Below are positions 18,024 to 44,460 of a DNA stretch of 64,000 nucleotides, piece by piece; the stretch's first letter is position 1, and each line of letters starts with the position of its first letter. The DNA lies in contig OX337228.1 of NCBI GenBank assembly GCA_946965045.2, forward strand, positions 6,696,001 to 6,760,000. Direction: 5' to 3'. The notes below the pieces were generated by a model that was given only the letters and a program-made list of their open reading frames with translations, had not been told where the DNA came from and did no database searches. Source of the stretch: Epithemia pelagica. Lineage: Eukaryota > Protista > Bacillariophyta. A program made the translations under genes and the position numbers.

Positions 18024-21000
18024 TTAGCTATTCGTATTGTTTCGTTCCAAGACAGTTGCCAGGGATATCGACTTTTTATTCTCGTTGTTTTGCTTGTGGT
18101 GGTAGTAATTTCGCAAGGAACCAGCCGATTGCGGAGCCGTCGACGACGATGGAGAGTTCCTGTCGTTTTTGTTCCGTCGATTCCACGGCCGTCCCGTCAA
18201 AAACCGATGGTTTTCAGATGCCACCGAAGAAGAAGGTGTTTGATGAGAGGTTGCTTCGTCCACGTCCAAGAGATGCATGGTTTCTACCGAAGTATTTTGA
18301 TGCGAATGATCATCCTGAGGAGATGGATGTCCCAGTGCCAATGATCGTTGCGCAGCCGGGCCACTTCTACTTTGATCGTCCATGTCTAACAGGTGAATTG
18401 TTTCTACTGATTCAGACCATCCACCGCTGGTCTGGTTGGCGATCGACCGATCGTCTGGTTGCTGTCGCCGTCTTTGATTGTGCGAATCAATACCCAGGAC
18501 TCGCAGTGAAGGAAGGCCTCCTGAGCGAGGTGTGTTTTCATTGCCACCTTTGGGGCTTTGATATTTATTCGCTCGTTTTTGATCCCTGCTGGGGGGACCA
18601 TCCGTGTTGTCATAGGAAGAAACGGAATACTCATCTGGTAAGAGAACAACCATTCGACGGGAACCACTCGTCGTTGTGCCAGTGAGAATGGAATTCTCTG
18701 CTACCGACGGATCCACATCGACATGGTTGTAGTGCAACCTCTCGACTCGACGCTTGTCGTCATCACCATTGTCAAAGTGTCCATGGTAGGCAGGATGACG
18801 ACCGGCTTCCAAACTGCTATTCTGTCGTAGCCGTCTGTCTTGGAACGACGTCGAGTCGGCTGACCTGTTCAAGGCATCCATATTGAGCGCAATGCGTTGA
18901 TGCAAGCCGCCACTATGATTCGTGTTTGTGGTGCTCATGCTCACATCACCCGTTGTTTGACGCTCCAAGTCATGGATACGACGAATAATGGATTCTTCGT
19001 CCTCTGTGCGAACCGATTCATTCAAACTATTGGGTGCAGATTGCATCGACTCGCCGGGCACGTAGGAATATTCCACAGGCATCAGTTCGTACAACCGTCT
19101 TGTGGGACTTGGCGCTGATTCAGCAGAAGCTTCGTTCTTGAGAGTTTCTTGTTGCTGTGTAGCGCGCTTGCCATTGTTCTTCGTTTTTGTGTTGTCCTTG
19201 TCCACTGAACTATACGCAGTCGCAGTCGTCTTCTTGCTGCTATTCACGTTCTCGTTCCGACGTTTCGGCTTTGCCTGTTCTATTCCAGCACGTACTTCTG
19301 TAGCTCTTGGAGCCATGGGTTTGTCGTCGTCATAATCACGATGGAAGTGAGGTACAGCTCCTGGAGACTCTCGTTCCTGTCGCCACTCGTTTGACTCCGC
19401 TTCTTGTGTCATTCTCTCCCTGTCTGTGTCCCTACTATTCCTCAGGGTTCCGTGCAAAATCGCCATGGCTTCTTCTTCTTCGCATGGATCGTTACAACAG
19501 TCCACCATTGAGTTGGCCAGCGTCACGGAGGACCGAAACAAGGGAACGATACTACTGCCCATGCTACTGGACTCCTTGGACAACGAAGAATGTTCTCTTC
19601 GAGGAACCACTGGCAATATTGTTGGTGACTTTTTCTGCTCTTTGGCTTGAGGTTGTGCAACTTTGACTGTTCCCATGGCCGGATGCGCTCCCCCGTTGGT
19701 ATCGAAACTCGAACTCACTGTGGGTTCATCCTCTTCCTCATCATTGCCAGTGATAATCTTTAACACGTCCATATCAACATTTCTGGATGTATGCTGTTGG
19801 TCGTTCGCCGCATGGTCCATCTCTTTTCGGTGGGTCCCGTTCTTCTTTTTGTTTTGCGAATGTCTGGCCGAAAGACGATCCCATGCCTCTCCTGCCGTGA
19901 TTGTTGTAGCAGTGGGTGTCCGGAACTTGTACGACAAGGGAGGTCCTCCTCTGTCGTTACCTCCTGACGACTCTTCCTCAGTTCCAATGGATGCTGTCGA
20001 TGTAGTGGTTGGCGCAGTAGCCAGCGATGGAGCATCATCATCTTGCTGTGCATGATGCGGTGATGCATGGTCACTGTGATAAATGACCTCGATCGAATTC
20101 CCATTCAGAGCAACCAAGATTGGATCTTCGTAGGGTTTGTCGTTCTTGTTCGTGCCATGACCAACGGAGGTACCGGCACGCAACGATGCTTTTTCACCAC
20201 GTTCATTTTTGATTCGGCCCTCTTGGGGAGAGGGTGGTCGACGCAGACGAAACAAATTGGCCTTGCGCGCAAGACACAAGGGAGAAGGAACTAAAGCACT
20301 GTCCCGATGGGTCGACGTCGTGTCTTTGGGTCCCCGTCGTTTGTTGTTTTTCGTGCTCTTGTTGTTGTTGGTCTTGTTGTGTTTTGGTTTGTTCTTGGTG
20401 GTGGTTTGTTTGCTGGTACCGGCTGTGGTAAAGGTTGCCGTTTCCACCAGACTGCTCGTGTCTGACGGGGTGGTTGCCGTGTGTGCAGCTACCAGAGCAG
20501 GAATCTTGTCCTTGTCCCAGTCATAGTCCTCTTCTTCCAACATGGTAGCAGTGGCCAGGTCATGATCGTGAGTATGTTCTTCTTGATAGATATTGTGATG
20601 ACTATTGTCATCCTCCACGAGACCGGCCACAACCAACTGCTCCGACGTAGAGGATGCCACAGAACCGTCTTCGCGTGGTTGCTGCTTGTGCCTTGTTGGT
20701 TGGGATGGTGTCAAAACCGAGTCTTTGGGGGTCAGGGGTGGTGGTCGTTCGACTTCCGGTCCATACCGTTCTCCCTGCTGTTGTTCGTGTGGTTGAATGC
20801 GGGTATACAAGTCATCCTCGCCTTGTTCCATGGCCGAGGCATGATCCAGGTCCCGTTCTTCTTCTTCTTCTATGTCTTCGCGTGTCACCTCTAATCGGTT
20901 GCCATCGTCCTTGCGTGGTGGATGGGAAGGTTCGTTGTGGACGGTCGATGCCGTGGCAGTACTGGACGAAGGAACAAAGAGTGAGGCCGACGAACGCAAA

Positions 21001-22643: not shown

Positions 22644-22840
22644 TGATACTAGGCAACTATTAGAGCTTTCGTTCGAGTCGCTTGGTTTGAAATACCAAGA
22701 CGACGTACGTTACGAGAAAACAGAGATAACAATGAAACCTCATACAGACACACAAACTGTATATTGTAGTGTTCTACCTAGGTCGCTGCCCGATATGGTC
22801 ACCAGGCGAAAGGTCCGCGTTGTTGCTCTAATCCTTTTTC

Positions 22841-23031
22841 TTCAACGGCCTTTCAATGACACTTAGATCATTGTGTGTTGGATTGTGTTTGTACGAACTT
22901 TGTGGCCCCATCGAGGTGCAGCAACTCATATTATTATAATGTATATGTATGTATTCGATGCCATGACCGTTGAACGGTATCGTGAACGGCACAATCAGAA
23001 TAGCTCCTCTTCGAATGCCACGTCACAACGG
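22841..23031. promoter_or_regulatory. Cluster of five AACGG/CCGTT (MSA-like, MYB3R-type) motifs upstream of the 1539-aa gene
   Basis: Cores at 22844, 22967, 22973, 22985 and 23027; includes the palindrome ACCGTT-G-AACGGT. The motifs are seen; function is inferred from plant MSA elements. Confidence 0.6.
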
Positions 23032-23459
23032 ACACTCTGGCGAGCCTCTGGCTCTAAGTAGAAAAGTCGGCTGTGCTCGTGTCGCAAGTCGAGGATATAT
23101 CCCTAACCCCAATAAAACCAACCCCAGCAAGCTACTCTACCGATAGTAGCCGTCGAAGTCGATCCTCCTCGAGTGTTGGACCACCGCCAACACTCCACCA
23201 TACAATCAATGATTGGCACCACTCCAGAATCTGTCGGCTAGAAAAAAAAGGCAAGAATCCAGAACTCCTGGTCTTGCATTGTCCATGAAGAAGGTGGCAC
23301 ATGAAAAATAAATAACTGTTGCCTTTTCTAGTAGGTGTAGCTTCAAGTGTTATTATTATGGCTAGCTTTTTCAAGTATTATTAGGAGAAGTATGGACTCT
23401 AGCACCGACTGTCCTTCCCCTAGGCAGACTCGTGTATGTATCATCCATGCATTCCATTC

Positions 23460-26400
23460 TTAGGGAAAGCCAAACCAGGACGAAGAATTCGTTTGACGGG
23501 AGGAGGCGGAGAAAAAGGAGGTACTTTCCTGTTCTTTGGTGGCCGTGGACTTGCGAGTTCCTCGCGACGTCGACGACGACAAGACGTGCGGTTTGCGGCC
23601 TGCTGCCCGTTGTTTGGAAGCGTATCGTCGTCGGTGATTGCGTGCGTGCCGTTCTTGAGAAGATGACGGAGACGATTGTTTCCACATGTGATCCATGAGC
23701 AAAAAGGGATCCCGATGAGGAAGATCGGCATATGTACTCACAGAAGAAGATGTTGCACATGAACTCTTGGAATCGTCATCATCCAACAAGCAGTCCATGG
23801 CATGGTACTTGGTATCTGTATTTGGTACTGACGCTGGCAATGAGTCGAGTTTTGGGGACTGCTTGTCGTGGGTGGATGAGCGTATTCCCACGGTTTGAAA
23901 CAGGGGTAGAATTGTATCATTGTATTCTTCAAAGGCTTCATCATCATCGTCATAGTTCACACTGTCATCCTCCTTGGGTGCTGCCTTGTCTGGAACATCT
24001 TCTTCTACTATTTCATCCATGGTAACATTAAAGTCGTGCAAGTTTCTCAAATGGTTCTTCTTTGGTTTCGAAGGACCAGTAGTAACAGATGCAGGTTGTG
24101 CAGAAGGAGCCGCCACATCAAGCTTGTGATCAAAGCCCAACGATGGGCTTTGAGTCATGGATGCGTCGGGTTCACCGCTGTCGTCCACGGGGTTCGAGTG
24201 CTTAGCAGTGTTGGGAGGACTTGAGATCGGCGGCTTGGGCGTCAACAGCATTTCGTTGCTGGTGTCGGCTCGCATGGTGTAGCTGGACGATCCATCATCC
24301 TTGTCTTCTTCCAAAGACGCCTCAGAAACTGCGGACAGGGAAAAGTGATTGACAAAACGTTCATTCTCTGTCCCTGGAGTGGAATCGGAAACTGTACTCT
24401 GATTATCCTGGTGCTGAGCGTGAGTGAGTAGGGGTGGCCCTTCTCCATTGACGCAATCCGCGGCATGGGTGCAAAGCACCAGCGGTCCAACATCCTGGGT
24501 GTAGCCACTTGATATGGAACGATCCGCCTCGGACGTGAAATCCGAAAACCGACTACTATCCAGTGTTTCGTCATCGTCCGTGTAGCTAGAGTGATTGTTG
24601 TCCTCGTAGTCTTCGTCCTCGACAAGTGCATCCAAATGCGATTCCTCGTTAGTGCCACTCGTCAATCCAAAGGCTGACCATAAACAGTCATCCTGCACTC
24701 TTGTGGCAAGCAAGCGTTGATTCTTCCTTTTCTTTGTGTCTTTTTGGATGCTGTTTCTTCCACGAGTGATCACTCGACGTCGCTTTTCCAGTTCTCCAAG
24801 AGAAGGAGAAGACTTATCCCGCTCGTTGCGAGATGACACTGTGTTGGGTGAGACTTCAGAAGATCTTGCCCCGCTCTCTTGTTTGTCCGTCGTTTCATTC
24901 TCGTCCAGTAGTGGACTTCTGCTTCCAGTCCTGATCACTTCGTCGTGAGTGTGGCTGTTGGAAGTATGGCCTGTTTCTACAGTAGCCACCGACCACATCG
25001 CAAGTGATTCTTCGTCACTGTGAACGTTGTCACTGTCCTCCTGTGGTTCATCATTTGGAATAGTCTTGCCCTCAGCGTTACCATCTGATGTACTGGTGTC
25101 TGGAGCGGAATTTGTCGCAGGAATCTTCGGATCAGATCCGTTAATTTCCTCGTCGCGTTCTTGCTTCTCTTGACGTGGTACACCCTCTTTCTTTGATCCC
25201 CCTATAGAGGAGCGTGACCGGAAAAAGCTAAATGTACGCGAGAGCCTCGACAAGGCACCCCCCGTGCCATGCGACCCCGGTTTCCCCGTTCCGGCTCCCA
25301 CATTAGATGCCGCGGATCCTTTGCTTCGGTGCAGTACAAGGAGTGGCTCTCTTTCTTTCTCGTCGTCGGTCTTCTTTTCTAATACAGTGACATTGTCATC
25401 ACTGTCATCCCCAAGTTTCTCGTGGCTCGTAGAGAACTGTTCTTCAAGCCCTGTCTTTCCATCTGACGCATCATTCGTCTTCTTCTGTTCCATCTCTCGA
25501 ATCGCATCTTCCATTGGTGTTCTCTCCTCATCATCTGTGTGTAGAGGTTGATCACGAGGGTTTTGTTCCGCTTCATCGTCTCGTGACCAACATGGAAGCA
25601 AATCCATATCTCCCAGTTTGCTGTCCCTTGTCTCATCATGAGGGACAGTCTCTAAAAGAATACCTTCACCTGATCCCGTGGTTTCCGGTAGAGGGACATT
25701 CTTCGTGGTAGAATTTACTTCAGTTCTAGACGAATCAAAAGCTTGATCGCGTGATAGACTGCCGGTGTCAGCGCTTTCTATGCTGGTACTTGAGAAGTCA
25801 TCCTCTTGTTCCATATCCCATGCCCTTACGTAGGGATCACGGCGACCTTGCGATACCGAAGCAGATGAAGACTTTCCCCCTTGTCGAAACAAACTGCTGA
25901 ATCCACCACGATGAACTGGCTTGAAGGACGACGGTCTTCGCAAGCATGCGGCCACAGTTTTCAAATTGTGTCGTTTTCCCGTTGTGACAACCATCGAAGA
26001 GGTCAACGAAGCCCCTTCTTCGTGATCTGCAAGTTTGAATTCTTGAACATGATCGTCCTCATTAGGTCCAATCTTGTTGTCTCCGCCATGATTATCTTCT
26101 GGGTCATTGTCTGTTGAGACGACGGTGCTTTCGTTATCATGAGCCACGAGTCCTTCTTCCTTGTTCGCGGAAACATCTGCCGTATCTTCTTCGTCGATAC
26201 TTTTTGAAGAGTTGTCTTCTAGTGTACCTTCTACTGGAACAGAATCAACCTCATTGTCGATCTCAAAGGATGACGAGGGTGGCTCAGGTGCCTTCTTATC
26301 CAATGCCATGCTTGGTTCCACAGATGTATCTGTTTGCTTGTCATCTTGCTCCATAATAGTGGTAGAGGCCCCATCCAACTCGTCGGAAGGGTTTTGGAGT

Positions 26401-28973
26401 TCCATCTCATGAATGCTTTTGATATCATCACCGTTGTCGATCTGACTAGTTTCGTCTCCATCCACTTTGGTTCTAGATTCGGCACTGTCGAAACCGGACA
26501 GTGGGGGAACCGCTGGAGACGGAGATGTGGAACGTTTGGAATCGAGGACACTGTTTAAAGTGCCATTGCCGGAACCGAGCATTGAATCCGATGGAGAAAG
26601 AGACAATGACTTTGACAGCGAAAGGGTACTTCGGTCATCAGTGAAGCTGTTGTTAATCAAACTACTCGACGGTTCCACCTCGATTCCGGACGCCTCGGCC
26701 ATATCTTTTTCGCTGTTTGTATTCGGATGAGGAATGGAAGAGAGTTTCGAACCAGCCTTGGCCTCTAAGGAATCTCCAGCATGATCTGTTTCAACCTCTG
26801 ATTCTATCTTCTTCTCACCATCTCCCTTCTTGTTCTTCCCTGTGCAAGCAAAACCTCTGCGAAGCATTTTGAACGAAAATACTCCTTCACCAATAAACGG
26901 CCTTCGAGACTCTTGTTCCGCTGCATCCAAGCCCTCTGGTAAAAGGTCTCGCACTTCCGTAACCATCTCTCCGTCCATTAATACAGTAGGATCCGCATCC
27001 AATGAGATTTCAATCTCCGTCTTCTCTTCCACTTCGTCTTCTCTCGAGACCGTTGTATTCGGCAGCTCAACGGTACTTTCGGCTGAACGGTGAATCTCGT
27101 CGTTTTGAGGTGGTGAATCTTGTACCGTTTCCATCAACGGCTTTGTGGGGAGAGCGTGCTCCGTCTGTTCTTTTGCATCCAAACATTTCTGGACTTGAGG
27201 AGGCTCTGAAGCCTCAGTATTGGTAGGCACGTCGTTGGGAGTATCGGTGGGGTCCGGGTCTGTCGCGCCCAAAACAAGCGGAGTTTCTGCTGGATCATTA
27301 GATGGATCGTCGCAAGAACCATTTGTTCCTGTTTGGTTTAGTTTTGATTCTTCTTCTACAAGGTCATCCACAAGCGTTGTAGGTTTCTTTCTTGGAGCAG
27401 AACGACCCCAAAGACTGTTCTTGACCATTTGAAAGGCGGCCGTCGAAGCGGATTCGACCATGCGGCTTGCCGAAGATGTGTTGGAGGATTTGCCCGGCTC
27501 GGGATCGGATGACTCTGTCTCCTGTTTCTCTTTCACTTGTGTGTGATCTTCTTCTTGAGTTTCTGGTGATGGGACTGAGAGCTGTGGTTCACTTGTTGCA
27601 GAGTTTCCAGGTGTCGGTTCCGAGGATGGTGGTGATGAAGTAGGAAGGAGGCTGTAGGAAGCACTGTTACTAGTCTTGCTACTGGAAAAAGATGGAGTAA
27701 GCGACGATGAAAAGGCCAGGAACCCACTCCAGGTCGTGGACAAAAGAGACTTTGATGGCTCGTCCGCTTCAAAGCAAGAAGTCTCTGGCGGTACAACTGC
27801 AAGAGTCTGGGTATCTTCTTCGGCCGCTGGCTCTCGTGTTTCGACAGATGCGGATGATTCTGAAGGTACCGACTGTGATACGGTACTAGGCTCAGATTCA
27901 GTTTCTAAACGTTCCCGTCTCGGCGAAAGGCTCTTGGCATTTCTGCGAAATGGTACCTTGGCAGGATTTCCGTCATTGCTGTAAGGTTTGAGTTTTTTCT
28001 TGTGCACACGACTGTTCTGGAGTAAACGCTCGTGTTGCTGTCGTCGTTGACGTTGTTGTTGCACCTCGTGCGGCTTGTGAAATGGGTCAGTGTTGCTTGT
28101 AGCGGTAAAGATTTGAATGGGATCTTCCCATTCAGAAGACGTCAAAGAGGATCGCTGGCGTCCACTCATGCGCCGGGAACTGTAATTGTAGCTGTGTTCT
28201 TCCTGCCTGCTCAACGATGTTCCTCCTCTTTGCATCGAGTAGGGACGTGGTTGACTGCGTGACCTCCACGTTCGAGATCCACCAGGTCGGAGATCGGATA
28301 CGGTTCTCTGTTTGTGAACATTCGTATTGCTCATGACTCTTGTTTCAGTCTCCAAATCCTGGTTTGGATCATCCTTGGGCTCTGGAACTGGACGCGTATC
28401 CTGGTAAACAAAAGTACGAATGGACTCTTCCTTATTGGCATCAGTCTCCAGTCTTCCTCCCCCATTCTTACTACCATTGCTACCACCACTCATGACAACT
28501 AGGTCCCCTCGCAGGGTAGATCGCAAATGGCTGGGAACACTGCTCATACTCATAGAAGAGGAACAAGAGGGTATGACCGATGGATACCACACCTGACTGG
28601 TAGTCGTACTGGCGCCATCGTTGGGTTCTTGGAGTGATGATGGTTCTTGCTGTGATGATCGAGGACTCGCTCCAGTATCCACACTACGGGCGTCGAGGAC
28701 GGCATCGTCTTGAAGAGAGCTGGGACTGTACATGCTACTACTTCCAGTGATCATTACCACACCTTGACGAGGTCGATATCCTCGATGACGCAAGGGACTT
28801 GTCTTGTTAGGATTACCAAGTCGTGGCTGCGTGCGAGGCGTGTAGGCAGATGATGCGCGTCGTTGGGGTATCGAGGCGTTGAGGGCTGATTGTGAGGGCT
28901 GTTTGAGATCGGTATCCCAACACAATTCAGCATCTCGTTTTAATTCTCGAATGCGTTCTTTCTGTTGATATTG

Positions 28974-29025
<52 letters not shown>

Positions 29026-29378
29026 GGACGACGTCTCCCTCTCCTTGAGGATGCCAAACCGATTCGACCTGGAGATTTGCTGTTCGAAGCTGACCTCCTC
29101 CTTCTCCTCCTTTGAGTGCTTGTGGGCCGTGTCATTCGATCAAGTGAGGGTGAAGGATCGCGTGCCTCCTCTTCATTTTTGTTTGTTCTTGTTTTGGGTG
29201 GTGATTTCCCGGCTACATCTCTGCTATTCGTTGCGCCTAAAGTCTGTTTGCTTTTGTTAATCGCACCAGGCTTGTTGGTGGGCAAGGTGTCGTGTAAACG
29301 AGACGAGGACCGGGCTGGTGTTGCTTCATAGCTTTGCACCACATCCTCATCCCTCGCAGTCGACTTGAACTGCCTCAT
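23460..29378 (-). CDS. Intronless 1972-aa acidic/Ser-rich intrinsically disordered protein with a poly-Q tract
   Basis: 5.9-kb stop-free frame from ATG; no domain recognised. Confidence 0.85.
28971..29024 (-). repeat. (CAG)14(CAA)4 trinucleotide tract encoding Q18
   Basis: Seen directly as (TTG)4(CTG)14 on the plus strand. Confidence 0.9.
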
Positions 29379-29574
29379 GGCCGAACTTGTAGGATGTTGG
29401 GTTTACAAGCGAATGAATTGTGGTCAATGCTGTTTCGAGGTGTAACGCATGTCCAATATCGAAAGGTGTCGATGGATCTATGTTCGATAGGTGCACACAA
29501 CAACAAAACAATTCGAAGAGAGTTGGATGTGGGGACAGGTAGCTTTCCTGGAAGGCTCGACCGGCGGATCCCGT

Positions 29575-29672
29575 CCGTTTTGGGACCACGACTTAGTTCG
29601 AAATTAAGTAGACGGCGCACATCCATCTAAGCCCCTGCTCGAACAGCTTCTCAGATCGTCCGTTGGACCGTT
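29575..29672. promoter_or_regulatory. Three MSA-like CCGTT motifs upstream of the 1972-aa gene
   Basis: Cores at 29575, 29660 and 29668; GTCCGTTGGACCGTTAA is a tandem pair, one copy reading TCCAACGG on the minus strand. Confidence 0.5.
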
Positions 29673-30252
29673 AACCTGAGTGGAAAAAAAATCAAGTCCA
29701 TCGCTGGAAAGGTCACGGTCTTGGATGCAGTCCGCGCGGGGGTATCTTTTCTATTTTTTCTTGCATGCGCAATGCGCACCGAAGGTGCTCGCTCATCTTT
29801 TCATCTTTTCGGATAGAGCATCCTCACCACAACTCGAGAGACCACAATCTTTCATGTACAACAATACAATGAGAAAAAGCACACAACAAGAGCCCGAAAC
29901 CTTGCCCGAACCGTGGTGCCCATCCATGTTTTGTGTCGGTACTCTAGATGCTTCTGAATTTTCTGCAGGTTCCGAATCCATGATACCCACACTCCACCTC
30001 GTGTAAGAGTAGCAATAATAATATAACCTAGTAGATTAGGTAGTTGAGGCAGTTTCCTCTTTTGTTTGGAGGATTGCTTTATCTCTCTTCATTCTGGTTC
30101 TTTTCAGGACGAACCTGGAACTGGCTTCAAGAGAGAGTTTGTCTAAAGTTGAGTGCTGGCTCGTCGTGACAACGGTTGTGATTGTTGGGTAGCTTGTCGC
30201 CCGGTAGTTGCTGCTGCTATTGTCAATGACGTGGCAGCACTCGATCGTCGTG

Positions 30253-32055: not shown

Positions 32056-33137
32056 TAGCGATTTCAGTGTAAGTAAAACTGATACTGACTATTCAATCAA
32101 TATCGCGCTGTAAGTTCCGTCGCAGTAGAATGAGTCAATGGGGTTAAGAAAAGATTGAAGTGTCGTCGACGCGCAGAGAAGGGGACGCTCCAACGTGTAG
32201 ATTTGAACGGCGATTTGCAATGAGACGTCTCCCACAAATTTGGAAAAGTGAGGGCGTCCCGCCAATGGCCTTTCAAGGAAGGTCCCCCGCCTTTCTTGAC
32301 AATATGAGTCGCTATGTCTACTACATCTAAAATTGTACAAAGTCAAAATCAATATAGGCCACAGAGTAGTGTGACAGATGAGAGGCTGGCGTGCAAACCG
32401 AGCGGGATGGATATGGTCGCACATTCTGAAATGGCAAAGGGATCAAGACCAAGCTAACCTGGTGAACATGAATTTTTGTGGCTTCAATACTCCTATTGTA
32501 GCCTCTTTGCCTTGTGGAAATTCAAGGGGGCAATAGCTTGGGTTGGTCGTGGTGAGCCATTATTGTCGGAGTCGCACATGCGCCAGTCTTCCGAAGCATC
32601 GTTATTTAGACGGAGCACACGACCGTTTGCTATATGCCCCAAGGAAACCCATGACCTTCCCCTAGCCGGCCAGTCCAAGACTCCCACAATATTGCGATTG
32701 TCAACCAAAAATGGCCACCCCATCCAGGATTCATACAACTATGAGTAGAGAGCAATGTGAATGTGTTCTCTGACCCGACAACTTGGCTTTTGAGATTAAT
32801 CCAAAGCAGACAGAAACATACTATCTCAGTCAAGGGAAGAGGTGTCTTCCACACGGCAAACGGAAACACAGAAACTTTCCGCCACTCTTGTTGAGTCTTA
32901 AATTATTGCTGCGCCAAAACAATAACCAAAAACTCTGGAAACTGGGTGTATCACTACTTTTTCATACGCTTGAACGAAGAATCTCCTTCATCGTCAAAGC
33001 AGTGCCACAACCAGCCAAGTAAGGATAACTTGGAACGTTTTTCGTTTTTCGTAAACATCAGGAATCCACAAGATCTACCTAGACGAGATTGATACCTTTG
33101 ATCCAGGAGCTACAACCACAACTTCCATCATCCAAGC

Positions 33138-36100
33138 ATGGAGTGTTGGCAGGCCAGTGGTGGTACGACAATGACTACTCCCAAACGACTGGCACCTCGT
33201 AGTACCGATGTTCTTTCACCCCATCATCCAGCCTCAATTGCAGCCGCTCAAGCCGGTGTGTCGGCCAACGATCAGGACACGGCTCCTGCCAAAGCTCAAC
33301 GAACTCGCAGTGACGATACCGAAAGTACACATGAACAAAGTGACAAATCCTCCTCCTCCTCCCAGCCGCACCACCAAGACGACACAGCGAATCCCGCCGT
33401 GACTACCATTTCTCACGCCAACGTGGTCATTTCCGTGGTACCTTCAAGAGACGAAGCAGACAAACCAACGCGACCCAAAGCTGACCCTCCGGCATCGTCT
33501 TCCTTTTTACAATGGGCGTGTAGCAGGACCGGTGCCACTCCTGCTACAGGGCAACGTTGTAGTAGTGCATCCTGTTTTACGGCCAATCCTTCCGCAAAGA
33601 CAGATTTGGAACAGATTCGTCAGGCCGTTACCATGGAAGATGAAGATGGTGATATGCGCAACAACCACTCGATGTTGTCCAATGACCCTTTGATGGGAGG
33701 CAAGCGATCGTCAAATCACTCTAGTACAAGAGCTCCTGCTCCAATGTCATCCTCCTCCTTGTACCATTCTCCACGTCGAGGCCGAGCGACATTCCCACCG
33801 ACTTCGATTTCCACTACCCCTTTGCAAATGGCCATGTCTGTAAGTTTACTGTCTAACGATGACGATGATGATGAAGAGGAGGACGAAGAAGAGGACGTCC
33901 AAGAAAAAGAGGAAGAAGAACAACAAGAAGACAATACGAGGGAGAAACGGCCCGAACAGAAAGACACTACGAACCATGAATCGACGACGAATACCCATCG
34001 AGACACATCACAGCTCTTGCTCGACGATTTGGATCATGCCGAATTGGCATCCATTCTCGAAAGTCCACCCCGCCCAGTTCGGGGCAGGCCGTCCAAACAG
34101 ACACTTGATTCGCCCCGTGGTCAACGGGGCCCCGTAAAAGGATTCACGCCACCACGAAGAAAAGGTCGAAAGGCATCTACACCTTCCAAATTGGAACCTC
34201 TAGGTCATGATGCCACCTCCCGACCACCCCAGGCTGTATCACACATGTACACGTCCGGCTTTGATCCTTTTGCCGCACCTGCAGGACAAGAAGAACCCAT
34301 GGATACGCTCAGCCAGGACGAACCAGCGGAAGCTACTCTTGGATCATCTGAACCTGCTCCCATTCTTGCACCGGTCGACGTACGAATGCAGGATCAAGAC
34401 CAAGACAAGGACCAGAATCCAGATGCTACTGTAAAGCCAAAAAGGGGACTTAAGGCATGGTTTCGTCGAAGTAATGGTGGTGGAGGGAAAAAGAAAAATC
34501 GGTCGACCAAGGCCAACCGAGAAACTACCCAATGTGAGAGCCATGGATTCCTGAATGAAGTCGACGCTCCGACTCCTGACCTGAATAATCAAATTTACCG
34601 CTACCAAGACCGGGAGAAGCAGCCACCAGTGACTGAGGATTATGGAGAAGAGGTAATTCCTGGCAGTGCGGGTGACCACTCATTTGTGCGAGTCAACTCG
34701 GTAACCCAAGACGAGGTGGAATTGTCTGCCGCCCTCATGTCACCACGAAACGAACCAACGGCTCTTGCGTTGGTGCCGCAGCCTGAAGAAACCATGACCC
34801 ATGAAACCAACCGTCGGAATAATCGAAAGAAGCGATGGTTCTCCAAAAACCGAAGTAAGAACAAACAACAACTAGAGGAGGGTCACTGCGACAACCAGCA
34901 AATGAACACGATTACCAATGTGAATGAAGCCGAGACATATCATTCGAATATTGTAACCAATACCCAACGGGAAGCGACTACCTCACGACGAGGAGGAATG
35001 GCGGGACCTGAGACAACAGCCATGCCACTTCTTTCGTCGTCATACAGTTCTGGCATGCTAGTCCATGAACCCAGTGTCAATAGCAAAACAAACAAGGACA
35101 GTGGTAGTGACCACGGTTCTGTGTTCTCACGAAAACAAGAGTCTGTCATCATTAAATCGCGATTGCCATCGTGTCAACCTTCTCGCGAACCAGTTGTCTC
35201 TGTGAAACAAGATATGAAGAAAGACGTTCACAGCAAACCACCAATGGCAAAGCCAAACACAAGTGGTGGCGCGAAACTGCACTCAGACTCTAATACTGAC
35301 GAAAACAATGGTGCCTTGCGTAGTAATGACAAGATTATTCCCTTGGGTAAATTGCCCAATGGCATGAATGCACCGTCCGCGGTCGTTGTTTCGGTCAAGA
35401 CGGTTGGACGCCAACGCAAGAAGAAACCAACATCGAGCACTGAAAGCACCATCAAGCCTCTAGAGCAACTCACCATCACTCCAGCAGCGCAGAATCCTTT
35501 CCATAATAACATCGACGACTACTGCAAGGAGATGAATGGAGTTGTCGAGGACACTCCTGGGAAAACAGCACCGGTAGGTTGGATGCAACAGGGTGAAAAT
35601 TCCACCATTCCCGCTACTACAGTTGCCTGTTCTCCGAATCGAAAAAACATGTTGCGCTTGTTTGGTCGTCGCAATACCCTTGGTGGAGATGCGAACACAA
35701 CACCCACAAGCACACCGACAATGCCTCCCACGGACTCTTCTTGGTCGGCATCATCACCTCAAACCTTGACTCGACCCATCGTTGTGGCTGGAGAAACGGT
35801 AGAACTCTTGTATGGGAACAACCAACAATACCAGGACCATAATGACCTTCCGAGCGAAAGCAATGAGGCGACCGTGGTCTTGCCAGCAAATCATTCCACC
35901 CGTGCTGCCGAAGCTCCGGGAATGCCCATTCCCCCCAGCTTGTCCCATTCCAACAACAACCACATAGTGGCGAATCAGGCTCATTTGACGGATTCACCAC
36001 GCCCTATCGAATCTGGGTCCACAAAGAACAATCGCCGCCCCATTTCTCCTCCTAGATCTCCTTTGCGACGCCCCCTGTCTCCTCCCCGGTCTCCACTTCG

Positions 36101-37142
36101 ACGCCCCTCGTCTCCTGCTGCTCCTGTTATTTCTCCACCCTCGTCACCAGCAGCTCATTCACCACGTGGACGGTACCAACGATTTCATGCCACAACGACA
36201 GCCAGTCCGACGCCCAGTACCAAGAGTCGTCGCAGCAACAAGGGCCATGATGATGGAGACACTCCCTCCATGGTAGAGATTCATTCCTTGACCGACATTA
36301 CCGATGTCACAGAAGACAAGACGGAACGGATGATTCAACTTCAACAAGAACAACAAGAAGCAAAGGAACGGCAAGCAAAAGAGCGAAAAGCGAAACAAAG
36401 GCGACAAAGACGTGGTCATCGCAAGTCAAGGTACAATTCGTCTGATGACGAAGATGATGATGATTCTTCCCGATCGTCCTATTCGTCCTCTTCCTCCCGA
36501 TCCTCATCTTCGTCGGCCTCATCCGGGTCGTTTTCCGGTTCCGATTCGTATGCCTCCTCCCATTCGTCGGGTATGTCTGAATCCAAGGACGAGTACGATT
36601 ATATTTCTGATTCAGAAGCCGAAAGCCCTAAGGATCCCTGGTCCTCCTATTCGTCTCGTCATCACCGCCGCCCATCACGTGGTGGTGGCCGTCGACCACA
36701 AAAACAAAATGGTCGTGAAGGACGAGGGCGACCACAACTCGAGTCGGGATACACAAGTGCAGGTGGTATTTCGAGAGAAACAGGTCTTGGTCCACGAATG
36801 CGTCGTCCGCGTCGCTTGGGCGGAGGAGTTGGCGGAAGGCGACAACAACAACAAACTACACAAGGTCAAGCACAATCCAGACGACCGTGGGGCACTCGCT
36901 CTGTGGATCGTTCTCGGGCCACGACAAGGACTCGTACAACCACCACCACCACCGCCAGCCCCCAATCCAGACAACGTCATCAGGCCCGAGACATGGAGGA
37001 TGACGAAGGCCAAATGACCAGTTCGAGTACCGATCAAGACAACGAAGATGACAACATGTCGGACGTTTTGGATCCGTCTGCCATGTTCCTTCATGCCTTT
37101 ACCTGTACCGAAGAGACATCAAACCATCATGGTCGTTCGTAG
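33138..37142 (+). CDS. Intronless 1334-aa intrinsically disordered protein
   Basis: 4-kb stop-free frame from ATG; SP-rich, acidic and basic blocks; no domain recognised. Confidence 0.85.
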   Translation: MECWQASGGTTMTTPKRLAPRSTDVLSPHHPASIAAAQAGVSANDQDTAPAKAQRTRSDDTESTHEQSDKSSSSSQPHHQDDTANPAVTTISHANVVISVVPSRDEADKPTRPKADPPASSSFLQWACSRTGATPATGQRCSSASCFTANPSAKTDLEQIRQAVTMEDEDGDMRNNHSMLSNDPLMGGKRSSNHSSTRAPAPMSSSSLYHSPRRGRATFPPTSISTTPLQMAMSVSLLSNDDDDDEEEDEEEDVQEKEEEEQQEDNTREKRPEQKDTTNHESTTNTHRDTSQLLLDDLDHAELASILESPPRPVRGRPSKQTLDSPRGQRGPVKGFTPPRRKGRKASTPSKLEPLGHDATSRPPQAVSHMYTSGFDPFAAPAGQEEPMDTLSQDEPAEATLGSSEPAPILAPVDVRMQDQDQDKDQNPDATVKPKRGLKAWFRRSNGGGGKKKNRSTKANRETTQCESHGFLNEVDAPTPDLNNQIYRYQDREKQPPVTEDYGEEVIPGSAGDHSFVRVNSVTQDEVELSAALMSPRNEPTALALVPQPEETMTHETNRRNNRKKRWFSKNRSKNKQQLEEGHCDNQQMNTITNVNEAETYHSNIVTNTQREATTSRRGGMAGPETTAMPLLSSSYSSGMLVHEPSVNSKTNKDSGSDHGSVFSRKQESVIIKSRLPSCQPSREPVVSVKQDMKKDVHSKPPMAKPNTSGGAKLHSDSNTDENNGALRSNDKIIPLGKLPNGMNAPSAVVVSVKTVGRQRKKKPTSSTESTIKPLEQLTITPAAQNPFHNNIDDYCKEMNGVVEDTPGKTAPVGWMQQGENSTIPATTVACSPNRKNMLRLFGRRNTLGGDANTTPTSTPTMPPTDSSWSASSPQTLTRPIVVAGETVELLYGNNQQYQDHNDLPSESNEATVVLPANHSTRAAEAPGMPIPPSLSHSNNNHIVANQAHLTDSPRPIESGSTKNNRRPISPPRSPLRRPLSPPRSPLRRPSSPAAPVISPPSSPAAHSPRGRYQRFHATTTASPTPSTKSRRSNKGHDDGDTPSMVEIHSLTDITDVTEDKTERMIQLQQEQQEAKERQAKERKAKQRRQRRGHRKSRYNSSDDEDDDDSSRSSYSSSSSRSSSSSASSGSFSGSDSYASSHSSGMSESKDEYDYISDSEAESPKDPWSSYSSRHHRRPSRGGGRRPQKQNGREGRGRPQLESGYTSAGGISRETGLGPRMRRPRRLGGGVGGRRQQQQTTQGQAQSRRPWGTRSVDRSRATTRTRTTTTTTASPQSRQRHQARDMEDDEGQMTSSSTDQDNEDDNMSDVLDPSAMFLHAFTCTEETSNHHGRS

Positions 37143-38267: not shown

Positions 38268-40445
38268 ATGGAGGTTCAAAAGGAGACGAAGCTAGCCGAC
38301 GATCGGCAGCATCGTTTCGAGAGTTCGGTCCTTGATACAACAGAAACGAATGGAAGCACAAGCCAATCTTTGTTCTTATTGTTTCAGGAGGTCCAAAACA
38401 CCAAACAGGAAAGCAACCATTTTCCAATCCATCCGAAGCAAAATGTAGAAGAGGATGAGGAAGAATCGGATCGATATCGAATTACCTATTTAGGTGATAT
38501 AGACGAAGAAGAACCAAAACTCGAGAAACAACTCTATTTTACAAGCAACTCGATGGCCGAGGAAACTTCACCCGCCAAACACATGACCACCAAGCCATTC
38601 GACAATAAGGATGCCGATTCGGAAACGGCCACTACGGCAACAGCTTCCTTATCTTCGCCTTCGGCCTCTTCCACCTCCTCGGCCTCTTGCATCATGCCAC
38701 CCAGTGTCTGGAGAGCCTCATCCCCTCCCTTGGTACTGCAAGGAGCAGATTCACCCGCGACAATAACTCCCTTGAAACAAAAGAAGAAGAACAACACTGC
38801 TTCTTCAGCCACAGAGCCGTTCCATTCGTCACCGCCACTCAAAGAGGAGCGAGAGCCAGAACCGCAACCACGAAAAACAGCAGCAGCACCTGGTAGCAGT
38901 AGTAGTCGCTTTGAATGGTTGTTGCAACACCGTCGTGCGTCAAAGAGTGCACCTGGTCCATCACAACAACAGCATCCACTCCAAAAGGCCGAAACGCAGA
39001 AACCTCAAGACGCAAAGCACGAAACACGGTCCGCATCCACCAGAGCCTTTTCCTTGGTGCGCCGATTAGCCAGCAAAGCCAAACGACCATCCTCCTCCTT
39101 GACGGCTCCCCAAGATACAACAACAACGAAAACAGGAACCTCTGCACCACCACCACCACGAGGCCATCGCATGACCGCACAAGAAGGACAATTGCGGGCG
39201 CGAGCTCGTGTCTTATTACGACAACGATTGCATCAACAAACACAAGACGAAACCAAAGACTCACGTACCACCAAAACCAAGACACCGTCGACCCAGATTC
39301 CTCCGGTTCGATCACATCGTGCAGTGACAGTTCCACAGGGTCCTACCTTGCAAACAGCTCAACGAAGCAATCATCGAACGACACGAGGTTCTGCCTCTAC
39401 TAGTCGTAGTCGTCCTGTTGCTCCACCGCTAAATACGAGAAAGAAGCCGTCTTCGAGTAAACCCACCACGGTAGCACAGGGTCCCAAATTGCAAACGGAA
39501 CAACGTGTCGTCGATCGCACCTTGCACTTGCAGTATAGTCGGCCCTCCTTGCAACGACCCGTCAGTCCTCGTCGACGCAAACCACCTGAAACGACCGTGC
39601 CGCAGGGTCCCCAGTTACGCACCGCTCATCGCATGCAACACCGTCAGGAACAAGAACGGGAACGACAAGCACGTCAAGAAGAATTGGAACGGGAGCAACA
39701 CCGTCAGGAAGAAGAACGTATCAAACAAGTGGCGGCTGCTGCTGCCGCGGCACCACACAAACCCATTCGAATTCGCAAGAGTACCAAACCCTTGACGGTA
39801 CCACAAGGTCCGAATTTACGATTGCATGCCAAATATGGACACAAACTGGCGCCTCGTGTCGATGTCGATTACGACAGTAGTTGCTATTCCTCGCCGTCCA
39901 TGATTCGCCGTAGTACCACGCACAATTCGGGCAGTTGTTACTCGTCGGCATCCACAACCGCGCGACAGCGGCGGCCCACCAACCCCACGTCTCGAGTGAC
40001 ACCTCAAACCTTGGTGTTTGACGCAGAAGCAGACCGAACCCCCACTCTGCAACGAGCCGAACCAGTACCATACCACGCCTCGGGCGAATCGGTATCCTCC
40101 TCCAAGGCTTCGCCTCGTCGCTCATCTCCCCACAAATCCTTGCGGCTGCCATCATCATCATCGGAAGCGTCATGGTCTCCACCCAAGGAAGTCCTCGTGT
40201 GGCGGCCACCCACCCGAACCACAATGTCGCCGTCGCCCACAAAGACTCCGAAGCGATCGTCTCATGGACACGTAGACCCGTTATCGTCGCCACCCAATCC
40301 AAGCAGCACAACAAATGCTCCTGCGGCGGCAGCATCTCCGGCAGCCTCTACCACTTCGTCCAACACAAGCACGCCCAGTCGTACCGTGATGCATCGTCCC
40401 TTTATGCGAGGCATTGTGGAAGAAGAAATTGTCTTTGCGGGGTAA
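38268..40445 (+). CDS. TPX2-like microtubule-binding repeat protein B (~725 aa)
   Basis: Four repeats: VTVPQGPTLQTAQR, TTVAQGPKLQTEQR, TTVPQGPQLRTAHR and RKSTKPLTVPQGPNL, with a short coiled coil before the last. Confidence 0.75.
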   Translation: MEVQKETKLADDRQHRFESSVLDTTETNGSTSQSLFLLFQEVQNTKQESNHFPIHPKQNVEEDEEESDRYRITYLGDIDEEEPKLEKQLYFTSNSMAEETSPAKHMTTKPFDNKDADSETATTATASLSSPSASSTSSASCIMPPSVWRASSPPLVLQGADSPATITPLKQKKKNNTASSATEPFHSSPPLKEEREPEPQPRKTAAAPGSSSSRFEWLLQHRRASKSAPGPSQQQHPLQKAETQKPQDAKHETRSASTRAFSLVRRLASKAKRPSSSLTAPQDTTTTKTGTSAPPPPRGHRMTAQEGQLRARARVLLRQRLHQQTQDETKDSRTTKTKTPSTQIPPVRSHRAVTVPQGPTLQTAQRSNHRTTRGSASTSRSRPVAPPLNTRKKPSSSKPTTVAQGPKLQTEQRVVDRTLHLQYSRPSLQRPVSPRRRKPPETTVPQGPQLRTAHRMQHRQEQERERQARQEELEREQHRQEEERIKQVAAAAAAAPHKPIRIRKSTKPLTVPQGPNLRLHAKYGHKLAPRVDVDYDSSCYSSPSMIRRSTTHNSGSCYSSASTTARQRRPTNPTSRVTPQTLVFDAEADRTPTLQRAEPVPYHASGESVSSSKASPRRSSPHKSLRLPSSSSEASWSPPKEVLVWRPPTRTTMSPSPTKTPKRSSHGHVDPLSSPPNPSSTTNAPAAAASPAASTTSSNTSTPSRTVMHRPFMRGIVEEEIVFAG

Positions 40446-41201
40446 CACCACTGTGGAGATCTGAAACACGCGAGACACATCTAGGAGGACAATCTAAAAA
40501 ATCGTTGGATTTGCACTCTCAAAGTGGGCAAAACACAGTTCCAAACACTCTTGTACCTACGACGAGTCCATTCGCAGAATTACACACTGGGGAGAGAGGG
40601 GCAACCAAACTACTCTGGCTGCTCTTCCGTTTCGAGTCGTAGATTGATTCCTATATAAACAGCATATTAGAGAAAGATAAAACACCAGCGTCTTCTTGTC
40701 TACGGTAGGGAATAGAATAACAAGAGTCAACCATTTGTTTTGGGGATTGTTTTTTGGAACACGTCCATGGATCGAGTGGGAGGTCTTGACGTCATCATCT
40801 TCATTTAGTGAGAGGAAGAATGCCTTTTCGATTTTCAGTTGCAGGCTCATGCTTATTGCTGCTGTTGCTGTCATCTGGAAATGCAGAGTGAACCAATGAC
40901 AGTGCATGTAATGTCATGTCCAGAATACCATTCACAAGCGTGTTGTGTCTTGGATGATTCCCAAAGACAGCGGATAGGAGCACAAGAAGAAACATGTTAA
41001 CGAACTCTCTCAACACCTTGATATATATTTCATTGTAAAGCACCTTTTGGTACTCGCAGATATACTCACAAGCGAAGCCAAACAACACGCTCAATGCTCA
41101 ATATCCGGACACTGGATTCCAAGGCGCGCCACAAAAATGTGTCTATCAGAGGTCTTATTGCTCGGATCGGCCGGCGTGTCCCCCACATTCCCCCAAGAGA
41201 T

Positions 41202-41347
41202 CCGTTGAATGAGCCTTACATAATTCTAAGAGTCCCGTACTTGTCTGTGGACACCTAGAATTTTCCCTGAGACATGCCGGCTAAGCCATGCTCCTCAACG
41301 GACAAACGGACATGCATTCGTAATTGCCTTTAATAACGGTCACCGTT
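41202..41347. promoter_or_regulatory. Cluster of five MSA-like motifs upstream of the ~933-aa gene
   Basis: Cores at 41202, 41297, 41305, 41335 and 41343; includes the tandem CAACGGACAAACGGAC and the palindrome ATAACGGT-C-ACCGTTAT. Confidence 0.6.
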
Positions 41348-41658
41348 ATCAGGGAGATTTCCTACGAGCGGCTGCCGATTGGGCGATCCCATAGTATCTC
41401 AAATCTCAATCTCCTGGTTGTTGGCTTCATTCTCGATCTTGGTTCTCTTGATAGCAAGACGTTGGCAGTTTAAAAAGAAGAATGAGACGTGGCTCCAGAT
41501 AATCTATGACCTAGAGACCGAACATAAAACAAAACAACAGAAGAGGGAAAAGTTATCTGAAAACACTGGAGGAGTTGCTTCGCAGAAACGATTCAAATTC
41601 CATTGGGAATCGTACCCCTACTATCGAACGACCAAGAAAGACATCCACAATCGAGGCC

Positions 41659-44460
41659 ATGAGAACACGACGTCTCACACGAGCGAGTATGCGATCCATA
41701 CGAAAGACTACTTCAACAAACAACAATACTCAAAATAATAATGATAACAACAACGACAAGCAGGATAAAGAAGAACAGGTATCCACCACCCCGGACGCTT
41801 CCCAATTGGACGACATCCCCAACGAGGCACCCACTAGTAAGCCATCTACACCACTACAACAAATAACAAAGCCGATTGCGGATGCATCGTCGTCATCATC
41901 CTACCGACGTGTTTCGTCCAAAATTTCGGTCTTGAGTCAAGCCGATACCTGCTTTGAATTGGTACCAGAACATCGTGTTGTACCATCGATAGTGGCACCC
42001 TCAAAAGCAGAAGAAGAAACATCCTCGTCACTGACCTCGAATACATCATCATTGCCCTTTTCATCCACCAAGCCCCGACAATGCAGCCCCAACCGTGTGC
42101 GTGTGGCAGGGGAGAAACCACAATCCCCGCCGACGACTCTACACAATGGAAGTCTGTCGGAACCCGAACCAGACGTTGACTCCGACGAAGAAGAAGATGA
42201 AAAGGAACCCGTGGTTCAGCCTACCTCGACTACACGGTCGACGAGTAATAGTCCAGTGCCGAGAGGAGGAAGACCCAAGCAAACGGCGGCGGTGGCAAGT
42301 CCTTTGTCTTGGCGTAGCCGAAGCCACGGGAATCAGCCATCTCCTTCGGGTGGCTCATCATGTACCACATCGGTAGTCGAGGGTCAAAGTGTAGAGTCGA
42401 CGTACTCCTCTTCCTCATCTTTCTCATCGTTCTCGGATTCGTCGGGCCGATTCTTGTTGCAACGCATTGCACCACCCACACCCAACCGTAAAGAAAAACA
42501 GCAGAAACATGCATTGGAAGAAGACCAAGAGAACTCTCCCTCTGCACGTGGTTCCGATCCAAAACTCTCTCACAACAGCAACAAGAACGATACCATGAAG
42601 CAGAGCAAGACATTGTTTCAAGGTCGTCAACGTCGACGACGTCGAAGTTTCCGATGGAGACAAGCGAAACGATCTCCCAGAAGAGTAGACTCTCGTGAAG
42701 ATCCTTTCTTAGATGGATTGCCCTTTGTTTCAACAAAAAGCGGTGGTTTCCCTGGCAGTGCAAGTAGTGCCACTCCTGCTGTCAGTGATGACAGCAGTAG
42801 TAATAGCGCGTCCACCGGCTCAGTGGAAAGTGAGGATGATGACATTTCCCAACGCCGGAAAACACCATCTCCGCACCATACATCCTCGTCTCCTAATCGT
42901 TTGGACGGAAATGACTTTGACTTTTTTGACTCGGAGGAACATGAGGTGGAGCATGAAGAAGACAACAAAGACGAAGAAGAAGTTTCCTTATGGGACGATG
43001 TGGCGGCTGCTGCCATTTTGAGTGTGGAAAGTAGCATCGACGATGACCAAAAGAACAAGGCAAGTGGACCAGCACCGACAGAACCCACAATGGCGCATAC
43101 GGCAAGATCTTCCACCGCGGCCGTCGAATCACACAGCAACAACAACGATGCCTTGTCCACCACCTCATCCTTGACCGCAAGTACAACGAATGCGAATGCC
43201 TATACGAAAATGACTCAACTCATAAGTCGGGAACGATCCAAAAACCACCGACTCCGTCCTCGCATTCTCGCTGCTCGCTTTCGACGAAAGGGAGGAGGTA
43301 CCAAGCCAAGCAACAATATGAAGAATGACAACAAGAATGGCCCGGTCCAAGAACAAGAACATCAGCAGCAAATTCAGGGCCACCAAGGATCTGCGACAGA
43401 GACTGCATCGACGAATGCTCCCAGTGGGACTTCTCATAATGTCAAACTGGTGGACTCCCATGAAACAGGAGAACATGAGGACAAGAGTAACCATGTATCC
43501 TGGTGGAATGCTCTACCCTTCCGGAGTAAACGAAGTTCCAGTCGACAGGCAGGTTCCTCGGCTCGTACCAATCAACACTCTTCAGCAGAAGAGCACATAA
43601 AACAACAACTCATGGACGTTCAGTCGGATGCGGCCAGTGTGGCAAGTGGTTTATTTTACGATGCCATTCACCCCCTCATGGGGGTCTGGTCTAACACGTC
43701 TACGCAATGCGCCGTCGATGTCAATGGCTACGTCTTTGCGGATGCAGAAGACGAGGTTCGAAATGATGCTCCCGTGATTCATGACCGGTATCAAGTTGCA
43801 GTAGGAGAAGAGAATAATGATGCTCCTCGAGATACAGCCGAACTCGATGGGGACAAGGAAAAGCCATCTTCTGCGACAGCCTCGACCACTTCGTCCATGC
43901 CAACCTTGGTTCGACATGGCAATGGAGGTCGGACTCATCGTAGTATTGCCGAATATTATCGTCAAGGAACCGCCATGGGAAGTCTCTTTAGCTCTGCTGC
44001 TGCGTCCTTTGACGCAACAACGGTGGATCACGACAAGGGGTGTTGTGCCATGACCTTTTTGCCTGATTCCATGGAACCTCCTCCTCGTGTTGCAGGAAGG
44101 ATGCCCCAAAACAAGAGATTACCCTTTCCGCGAAGGAACCGCGATCGCTACACTACAGACAACATGATAGCAGAAGAGGAAGAAGACGATGGTATTCTTG
44201 TCACGGACGAGAAATCATCCTCGTCTTCCCCAACAGCAAAGCATACACCCTCTACTACAAGATCTACAACAAGAGATCTTGGCGAAGAAGACGACCCATG
44301 TGACGAAGGATCCCAATATTCCCAAGGAGAGGATCCATCCTGTACATCCAGTGCCTTTCCTTCACAGTATAGTACGGTTTCCTATTATGTCGATGAACTT
44401 GAGCCAATTGCTGCTTCATATACAATGTATTCCTTTGCCGTCCGGCCAGGTGACGAATAA
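41659..44460 (+). CDS. Intronless ~933-aa intrinsically disordered protein
   Basis: First in-frame ATG at 41659 (MRTRRLTRASMRS) within the 961-codon ORF; no domain recognised. Confidence 0.8.
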   Translation: MRTRRLTRASMRSIRKTTSTNNNTQNNNDNNNDKQDKEEQVSTTPDASQLDDIPNEAPTSKPSTPLQQITKPIADASSSSSYRRVSSKISVLSQADTCFELVPEHRVVPSIVAPSKAEEETSSSLTSNTSSLPFSSTKPRQCSPNRVRVAGEKPQSPPTTLHNGSLSEPEPDVDSDEEEDEKEPVVQPTSTTRSTSNSPVPRGGRPKQTAAVASPLSWRSRSHGNQPSPSGGSSCTTSVVEGQSVESTYSSSSSFSSFSDSSGRFLLQRIAPPTPNRKEKQQKHALEEDQENSPSARGSDPKLSHNSNKNDTMKQSKTLFQGRQRRRRRSFRWRQAKRSPRRVDSREDPFLDGLPFVSTKSGGFPGSASSATPAVSDDSSSNSASTGSVESEDDDISQRRKTPSPHHTSSSPNRLDGNDFDFFDSEEHEVEHEEDNKDEEEVSLWDDVAAAAILSVESSIDDDQKNKASGPAPTEPTMAHTARSSTAAVESHSNNNDALSTTSSLTASTTNANAYTKMTQLISRERSKNHRLRPRILAARFRRKGGGTKPSNNMKNDNKNGPVQEQEHQQQIQGHQGSATETASTNAPSGTSHNVKLVDSHETGEHEDKSNHVSWWNALPFRSKRSSSRQAGSSARTNQHSSAEEHIKQQLMDVQSDAASVASGLFYDAIHPLMGVWSNTSTQCAVDVNGYVFADAEDEVRNDAPVIHDRYQVAVGEENNDAPRDTAELDGDKEKPSSATASTTSSMPTLVRHGNGGRTHRSIAEYYRQGTAMGSLFSSAAASFDATTVDHDKGCCAMTFLPDSMEPPPRVAGRMPQNKRLPFPRRNRDRYTTDNMIAEEEEDDGILVTDEKSSSSSPTAKHTPSTTRSTTRDLGEEDDPCDEGSQYSQGEDPSCTSSAFPSQYSTVSYYVDELEPIAASYTMYSFAVRPGDE

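Follow-up and report, generated by a model that had tools for sequence, protein, structure and literature searches.

Clustered Myb-type AACGG sites at orphan disordered-protein genes and a silicanin-like/prolyl-hydroxylase-like gene pair of the diatom Epithemia pelagica

What do clustered AACGG sites mark in a diatom genome? The question is raised by a 64,000-nt stretch of Epithemia pelagica DNA (GCA_946965045.2, contig OX337228.1, positions 6,696,001-6,760,000 of the forward strand; hereafter the window), in which six long open reading frames (ORFs), here called genes A to F, form a row whose two arms diverge from one spacer (32056-33137), and in which AACGG cores are bunched upstream of several genes. 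The AACGG core is a Myb recognition sequence, and in plants, AACGG-bearing mitosis-specific activator (MSA) elements bound by three-repeat MYBs drive genes of the G2/M phase. A preliminary description of this DNA had taken all six genes for a single G2/M regulon, clustered on the chromosome, of scaffolds for the spindle, the cortex or morphogenesis, controlled by a MYB3R factor via MSA-like elements. Our analysis points to a different grouping. Judging from the sequence, we think it somewhat probable that a functional Myb-type promoter module is common to genes A, B and F of the row and to a divergent pair of silicanin-like and prolyl-hydroxylase-like genes that lies outside it.

Paired AACGG sites in four promoter clusters

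Clusters of five, three and five cores had been placed 200-460 bp upstream of A, B and F, respectively, and all three were recovered, at 197-457 bp from the ATG codons. The A promoter cluster (22844-23031, -261 to -448 from the ATG) has five cores, among them a palindromic pair and a tandem pair 12 bp apart. The three cores of the B promoter (29575-29672, -197 to -298) all carry the extended flank described below, and two of them form a tandem pair 8 bp apart. Four of the five cores of the F promoter (41202-41347, -312 to -457) are extended, with one tandem and one inverted pair, each spaced by 8 bp. A fourth cluster, newly recognised here, sits 13 kb from the gene row in the 559-bp divergent promoter between the prolyl-hydroxylase-like gene, G, and the silicanin-like gene (57408-57517); all four of its cores are extended, three are exact copies of YCAACGGAY, and a tandem pair is 10 bp apart. 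In all four clusters, the cores precede the start codon by 100-460 bp and are often paired, either in tandem at 8, 8, 10 or 12 bp or inverted.

The cores within these clusters also resemble one another beyond the five letters by which they were found. The flank AACGG[AT][CT] is present at 13 of the 17 cores that make up the four promoter clusters, compared with 22 of the 112 other sites (Fisher P = 7e-6), and on the 5´ side a T at -2 occurs at 53% of cluster sites versus 12% of the others, and a C at -1 at 53% versus 33%. Because of this flank bias, the box can be written approximately as TCAACGG(A/T)C. The flank signature played no part in defining the cluster sites, and it is this independent bias that most strongly supports the sites as real. 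Nothing beyond the box is common to the four regions, which are therefore not copies of a repeat; descent from a mobile element was ruled out on the same ground. Taken together, the shared consensus, the paired geometry and the position of the clusters make them look like genuine Myb-type sites. YAACGG is a generic Myb site, common to many R2R3 and 3R factors.

Another short motif was noted in two of these regions. TTCGAA, which fits the LIN54/CHR (cell cycle genes homology region) consensus TTYRAA, occurs at 23010, 29512 and 29597, in the regions of the A and B clusters, where about 0.19 copies would be expected in 686 bp, and is absent from the F and G/silicanin-like regions; the comparison is post hoc and the numbers are small.

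How unusual is such clustering? The window holds 129 AACGG cores, or one per 496 bp, which bears out the background of about one per 500 bp assumed in the preliminary description. With uniform placement, 0.075 runs of at least five cores in 190 bp would be expected and three are seen; close pairs number 13 against 4.2 expected; and at least four cores in 500 bp occur in three of 13 independent promoter regions (14 genes counted, two of them sharing one spacer; P ~0.002). The ten other promoters of the window have zero to two cores each, with one extended site overall. Two control loci, 46 kb in all, one from the same species (L003) and one from a related species (L004), contain no AACGG cluster; a third locus, from a more distant genome (L001), is AT-rich and has few AACGG sites of any kind. 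A more demanding comparison is with other 5-mers of similar abundance in non-coding DNA, of which 4 of 209 have as many clusters of four in 150 bp. This gives an empirical p of about 0.02, so the clustering of AACGG is unusual, though not extreme.

Two genes flank the fourth cluster. Gene G (55072-57059, minus strand) encodes a protein with an acidic N-terminus and a transmembrane (TM) segment, and its C-terminal part is a prolyl-4-hydroxylase-like 2OG-Fe(II) oxygenase domain; the gene is made up of two overlapping ORFs (55728-57059 and 55072-56088), which implies an intron or a frame change near 55728-56088. Its divergent neighbor (57619-59221, plus strand) has two exons (57619-58357 and 58437-59221) separated by a 79-nt GT..AG intron (58358-58436), and encodes a 507-aa product with a signal peptide, RXL motifs, 20% Asn plus Gln, 18 cysteines, one TM helix and a 24-aa tail, the signal peptide and TM segment being judged by eye. 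This is the architecture described for the silicanin family, which consists of type-1 membrane proteins with a signal peptide, RXL motifs, an NQ-rich luminal domain with 18 cysteines, and a cytosolic tail of about 20 aa (PMC5525289). The likeness to the Silicanin-1 family and the sin1 (SiMat7) co-expression cluster of Thalassiosira pseudonana extends over the signal peptide, the RXL motifs, the NQ-rich 18-cysteine region, the TM helix and the short tail. The difference lies just before the TM helix, where the heptapeptide GGQKFAL, described as invariant in silicanins (Kotzsch et al., PMC5525289), is replaced by SERLQWAL. The preliminary description had named a silicanin in this window; the family architecture stands, but in the absence of GGQKFAL we call the protein silicanin-like and not a Sin1 orthologue. 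A search of a protein atlas with the silicanin-like exon returned only uncharacterised diatom clusters, and the literature searched describes no promoter element of the sin1 cluster.

The six-gene row and its TPX2-like members

The row itself consists of six long intronless ORFs, all found where they had been reported. On the minus strand lie A (18024-22643), a Ser/Arg/Pro-rich disordered protein of 1539 aa when read from a TTG, or 1519 aa from the first ATG at 22583; B (23460-29378), an acidic, Ser-rich disordered protein of 1972 aa; and C (30253-32055), 600 aa with two C-terminal TPX2-type repeats. On the plus strand, beyond the divergent spacer, lie D (33138-37142), a disordered protein of 1334 aa with SPxR repeats and an acidic, Ser-rich tail; E (38268-40445), 725 aa with four TPX2-type repeats at residues 354-525; and F (41659-44460), an orphan disordered protein of 933 aa. 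Serine makes up 13-16% of all six products. No Pfam domain was detected in any of them, the sole match being a non-significant one to TPX2_importin in E. Genes A, B, D and F are four orphans without mutual similarity, which rules out their origin as paralogues in a mirror duplication of the block. A word-based search found no relatives of F outside its own species.

That these ORFs are genes is apparent from a second sequence of the same region. An ENA assembly contains a locus (L002) that aligns collinearly with window positions 20065-42034 at 97% identity; since its variants are also found in the DNA runs that cover the window, it represents either the second haplotype or a very closely related strain. 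Divergence along the block ranges from 1.0% to 4.5%, and the ORFs, of 600-1972 codons, stay open in both haplotypes. Indels inside the six ORFs are all multiples of three (3 nt only in A; in-frame 3 and 30 nt in B), except for a single-base indel close to the end of C, and intergenic indels are of arbitrary length. The ratio of nonsynonymous to synonymous divergence (dN/dS) between haplotypes is 0.55 for A, 0.55 for B, 0.66 for C, 0.52 for D and 0.25 for E. From the in-frame indels and these ratios, we conclude that A to F are real protein-coding genes, fast-evolving and under weak purifying selection. The exceptional 1-nt indel, near the 3´ end of C (window 30253-30300, L002 11770-11920), yields alleles of 600 and 639 aa whose tails differ beyond the last TPX2 repeat.

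Coding sequence is no better kept than the spacers (3.1% divergence in B, 4.5% in the B-C spacer, 1.0% in D and 1.0% in the D-E spacer), and at 97% identity, the second haplotype is too close to be of use for footprinting. All 18 intergenic AACGG cores are identical in it, though adjacent bases differ; this includes all cores of the A promoter, and those of the F promoter, which are kept while adjacent bases have changed. Four sequencing runs, all of one study and in the form of contigs, contain the locus, and no run recorded as RNA was found among those that do. A hole in run X4 at 40641-41533, corresponding to the E-F spacer, was considered as a sign of transcript ends and rejected, since runs X1-X3 are fragmented there too and the spacer is highly polymorphic.

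The TPX2-type repeats that had been reported in C and E hold up. The two proteins are paralogous (E = 7e-12), encoded in inverted orientation, and share a repeat unit, T-V-P-x-G-P-x-L-x-T-x-x-R, present in two copies in C and four in E. Standard searches did not reach the family: E matches TPX2_importin with E = 0.58 and 10.9 bits (cut-off 29.5) and C has no match, so that neither meets the Pfam gathering score; sequence and profile searches of the PDB with the TPX2-like region were negative; and a protein atlas search with the repeats of E returned nothing usable. A word-based homologue search with E retrieved proteins of its own species only, and a region-restricted search retrieved P0003 and P0005. 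A profile built from the repeat region of C and E and run against 1.84 billion representative proteins gave 35 matches, of which 32 were not the queries themselves; 12 of these 32 carry Pfam TPX2_importin (best 2.4e-23) and four carry TPX2. P0009 (E = 2e-17 to the C/E profile) and P0015 are among the matches. When the profile was aligned by hhalign with the TPX2_importin regions of three matches (E = 6.2e-5, probability 65%), the TVPxxPxLxTxxR motifs were superposed. Because the profile retrieves bona fide TPX2 proteins and the motifs align, we accept C and E as divergent TPX2-family paralogues that fall below the Pfam cut-off. Their likeness to the family (PF12214 TPX2_importin, PF06886 TPX2) is one of sequence and lies in the T-x-P-x-x-P-x-L-x-T-x-x-R repeats, two in C and four in E; they differ in their sub-threshold Pfam scores and in that the remainder of each protein is lineage-specific disorder.

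A third TPX2-like paralogue of the same species (P0006, 979 aa) is encoded on another contig (L003, 10001-12940), where it adjoins fragments of a Copia-type retroelement and has no AACGG cluster upstream. An orthologue of C is present in the more distant genome (L001) and keeps the C-terminal repeats as well as two N-terminal motifs, F-A-x-L-x-x-Q-W-N-Q-P and W-K-R-x-G-x-R-K-W-L-S-Q-H-D-Q (window 31672-31900; L001 9647-10000), which could serve as docking motifs.

A, D and E have more sites of the cyclin-dependent kinase (CDK) type, [ST]P.[KR], than expected (in A, 10 versus 4.2). The excess comes largely from SPxR/RS-type repeats, and it is compatible with CDK substrates but also with SR-like proteins. 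In A and D, where these repeats form long tracts that resemble those of SR-related matrix proteins, they explain much of the excess.

Which programme the box may serve

Can the row still be read as one G2/M regulon? Part of that reading stands, in that the genes are real, two of them belong to the TPX2 family, and clusters of Myb-like sites are found upstream of A, B and F. What is not supported is the block as a regulatory unit. No cluster is found at C, D or E, and a promoter outside the block has one. The preliminary description had itself cautioned, correctly, that E has no proximal cluster (the 1.1 kb upstream of it are free of cores) and that the spacer between C and D contains only three scattered cores, which is the background level. 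Mitotic annotation within the row is restricted to C and E, exactly the genes that are free of the box, and A, B and F, which bear it, are orphans; indeed A, B, D and F are without a recognisable mitotic feature. The arrangement is not shared with relatives either. The neighbors of the C orthologue in the distant genome (L001), and those of a TPX2-like gene in the related species (L004), are unrelated to A, B, D, E and F, so that conservation of the block is seen within the species only.

Other cell-division genes in the window had been cited in favor of the regulon. PDS5 is indeed present (Pfam PF20168, E = 1.3e-16), with its promoter outside the window. The kinase called Aurora-like is a Ser/Thr kinase (61145-62759) whose gene contains one intron or more; for a stretch of about 85 residues within a single exon (62049-62759), its nominally best match in the PDB is Aurora A (3e-15), but CDPK2 (7e-15) and MAPKAPK2 (3e-14) score about equally, so the gene is not diagnostically Aurora. 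The CDK-type sites in A, D and E would fit a mitotic role, as would the division timing that the literature attaches to silicanins, but the excess of these sites stems largely from SPxR/RS-type repeats. With the TPX2 paralogues and the clusters at A, B and F on one side, and the missing clusters, the box outside the block, the unrelated orphans and the absent synteny on the other, a single G2/M regulon of all six genes now appears improbable.

For the promoter module, we propose instead that a putative Myb-domain factor, of the R2R3 or 3R type, binds the clusters and would thereby co-regulate A, B, F, G and the silicanin-like gene, so that co-regulation would cover this subset and the six-gene block would not be a regulatory unit. 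As to when these genes might be expressed, we tentatively suggest the period of cell division and valve formation, which we regard as possible though far from assured. This timing is favored by the behavior of silicanin-type genes in other diatoms and by analogy with the plant MSA/MYB3R system. Transcripts of sin1 and of the genes co-expressed with it reach their maximum in synchronised T. pseudonana when the valves form (PMC9894196), and silicanin-1-like genes drop together with mitotic genes in G1-arrested Seminavis robusta (PMC8027222). The link from box to division timing accordingly hangs on one gene, the silicanin-like one, and on expression in other species.

The plant system offers a partial match. 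The plant MSA consensus is (T/C)C(T/C)AACGG(T/C)(T/C)A. The diatom box shares with it the AACGG core, a TC-type 5´ flank (T at -2, C at -1) and the presence of several copies within a few hundred base pairs upstream of the gene; the three to five proximal cores in 100-190 bp at A, B, F and the G/silicanin-like promoter are as in MSA promoters, unlike the situation at C, D and E. It departs from the plant element in its 3´ flank, (A/T)C instead of YY, so that the extended consensus is matched only in part, and in its genes, since those that bear the box here are not recognisably mitotic and the TPX2-like genes are without it. No MSA-type element has been described in diatoms in the literature searched. 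Within diatoms, the nearest comparison comes from Cylindrotheca closterium. In a preprint on that species (bioRxiv 10.64898/2026.03.25.714157), the diatom cis-regulatory code is called largely unknown, Myb motifs are found to predict meiosis and gametogenesis expression, Myb3R5 is sexual-stage-specific, and M-phase genes are enriched among the predicted Myb targets. The likeness lies in Myb-type promoter motifs that predict co-expression in a diatom, with M-phase genes among their predicted targets; the difference is that the C. closterium network was inferred for a different species and for meiosis and gametogenesis. The preprint supports a link between a Myb box and division-type genes, and equally a sexual-stage function, which fits fast-evolving orphans.

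Several observations weigh against the promoter module, and some of them also speak for chance or compositional clumping with no regulatory role. The window-wide total of AACGG is at chance (129 versus 132 in shuffles). Many 5-mers clump in this window, and the close-pair excess of AACGG comes only 19th among 491 across the window and 8th among 501 in its non-coding part, in addition to the comparable 5-mers that equal its clusters. One of the three strongest clusters is not in a promoter at all, but within the coding sequence of B (27050-27140), where five cores fall in 90 bp (27050-27136). Identity of the cores in the second haplotype is weak evidence, as about 2.7 changes would have been expected where none was seen (P ~0.07), and the X4 gap over the E-F spacer could equally have arisen because a polymorphic stretch was assembled in fragments. 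The species has three TPX2-like genes, and no box cluster is present at any of them. A metagenome scan for silicanin relatives, upstream of which the box could have been sought, found none, and a word-based search detected no orthologue of F. Against clumping stand the flank bias, which was not used to select the sites, the recurrence of pair spacings of 8-12 bp and the consistent position 100-460 bp upstream. The B coding cluster lacks the extended flank at all but one of its five sites and for that reason looks like background; it may be a chance clump or an internal element, and it probably differs from the promoter box. We therefore give chance clumping a minor, though not negligible, share of the probability.

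If the sites are functional, the box might still serve a programme other than vegetative division. It could mark genes of the sexual phase, with meiosis, gametogenesis or auxospore formation under the control of Myb factors such as Myb3R5 and with the orphans as fast-evolving reproductive proteins; the C. closterium study cited above (10.64898/2026.03.25.714157) agrees with this, as does the relaxed constraint on A, B and F. The silicanin-like and prolyl-hydroxylase-like genes that carry the same box would, however, be expected to act in vegetative wall formation, and no feature of the locus connects its genes with sex, so we consider a sexual-stage role unlikely. We rate no higher the possibility that the box is recognised by a factor, of the Myb type or not, that has no part in the cell cycle and responds, for example, to diel, nutrient, silicon or stress cues. 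Such a role is compatible with the generic nature of YAACGG among R2R3 and 3R factors. Diatom Myb genes are diel- and stress-regulated (PMC6738920, PMC13643027), and sin1-type genes also respond to silicon supply. There is no positive evidence for it at this locus, however, and in synchronised diatoms, silicon response and division timing are confounded.

The promoter module with division-related timing leads to a broader and more speculative proposal, which we hold a little less firmly than the timing itself. Paired TCAACGG(A/T)C boxes might be the diatom counterpart of the plant MSA/MYB3R switch, defining a division and valve-formation programme that would couple silica-deposition genes (silicanin-like and prolyl-hydroxylase-like) to rows of fast-evolving disordered proteins, possibly lineage-specific scaffolds of the spindle, the cleavage furrow or the silica deposition vesicle.

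Meaning for diatom wall formation

TPX2 has previously been reported in this group as fragments only (PMC10454807), and the locus adds two divergent TPX2-family genes to that record. The main value of the locus is nevertheless the testable link that it provides between a promoter box and a silica-morphogenesis gene. A 2026 paper describes the study of regulators of frustule formation as a field in its infancy. A box common to the promoter of a silicanin-like gene and to those of orphan disordered-protein genes offers a handle on the factor that times wall-building genes, and it allows both the genome-wide prediction of further members of the programme and the choice of uncharacterised proteins for localisation. 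Should the box prove to mark a sexual-stage or other programme, it would still be a usable promoter signature. If it is indeed the diatom counterpart of the MSA/MYB3R switch, it would be the first cis-element to link frustule morphogenesis genes to the cell cycle.

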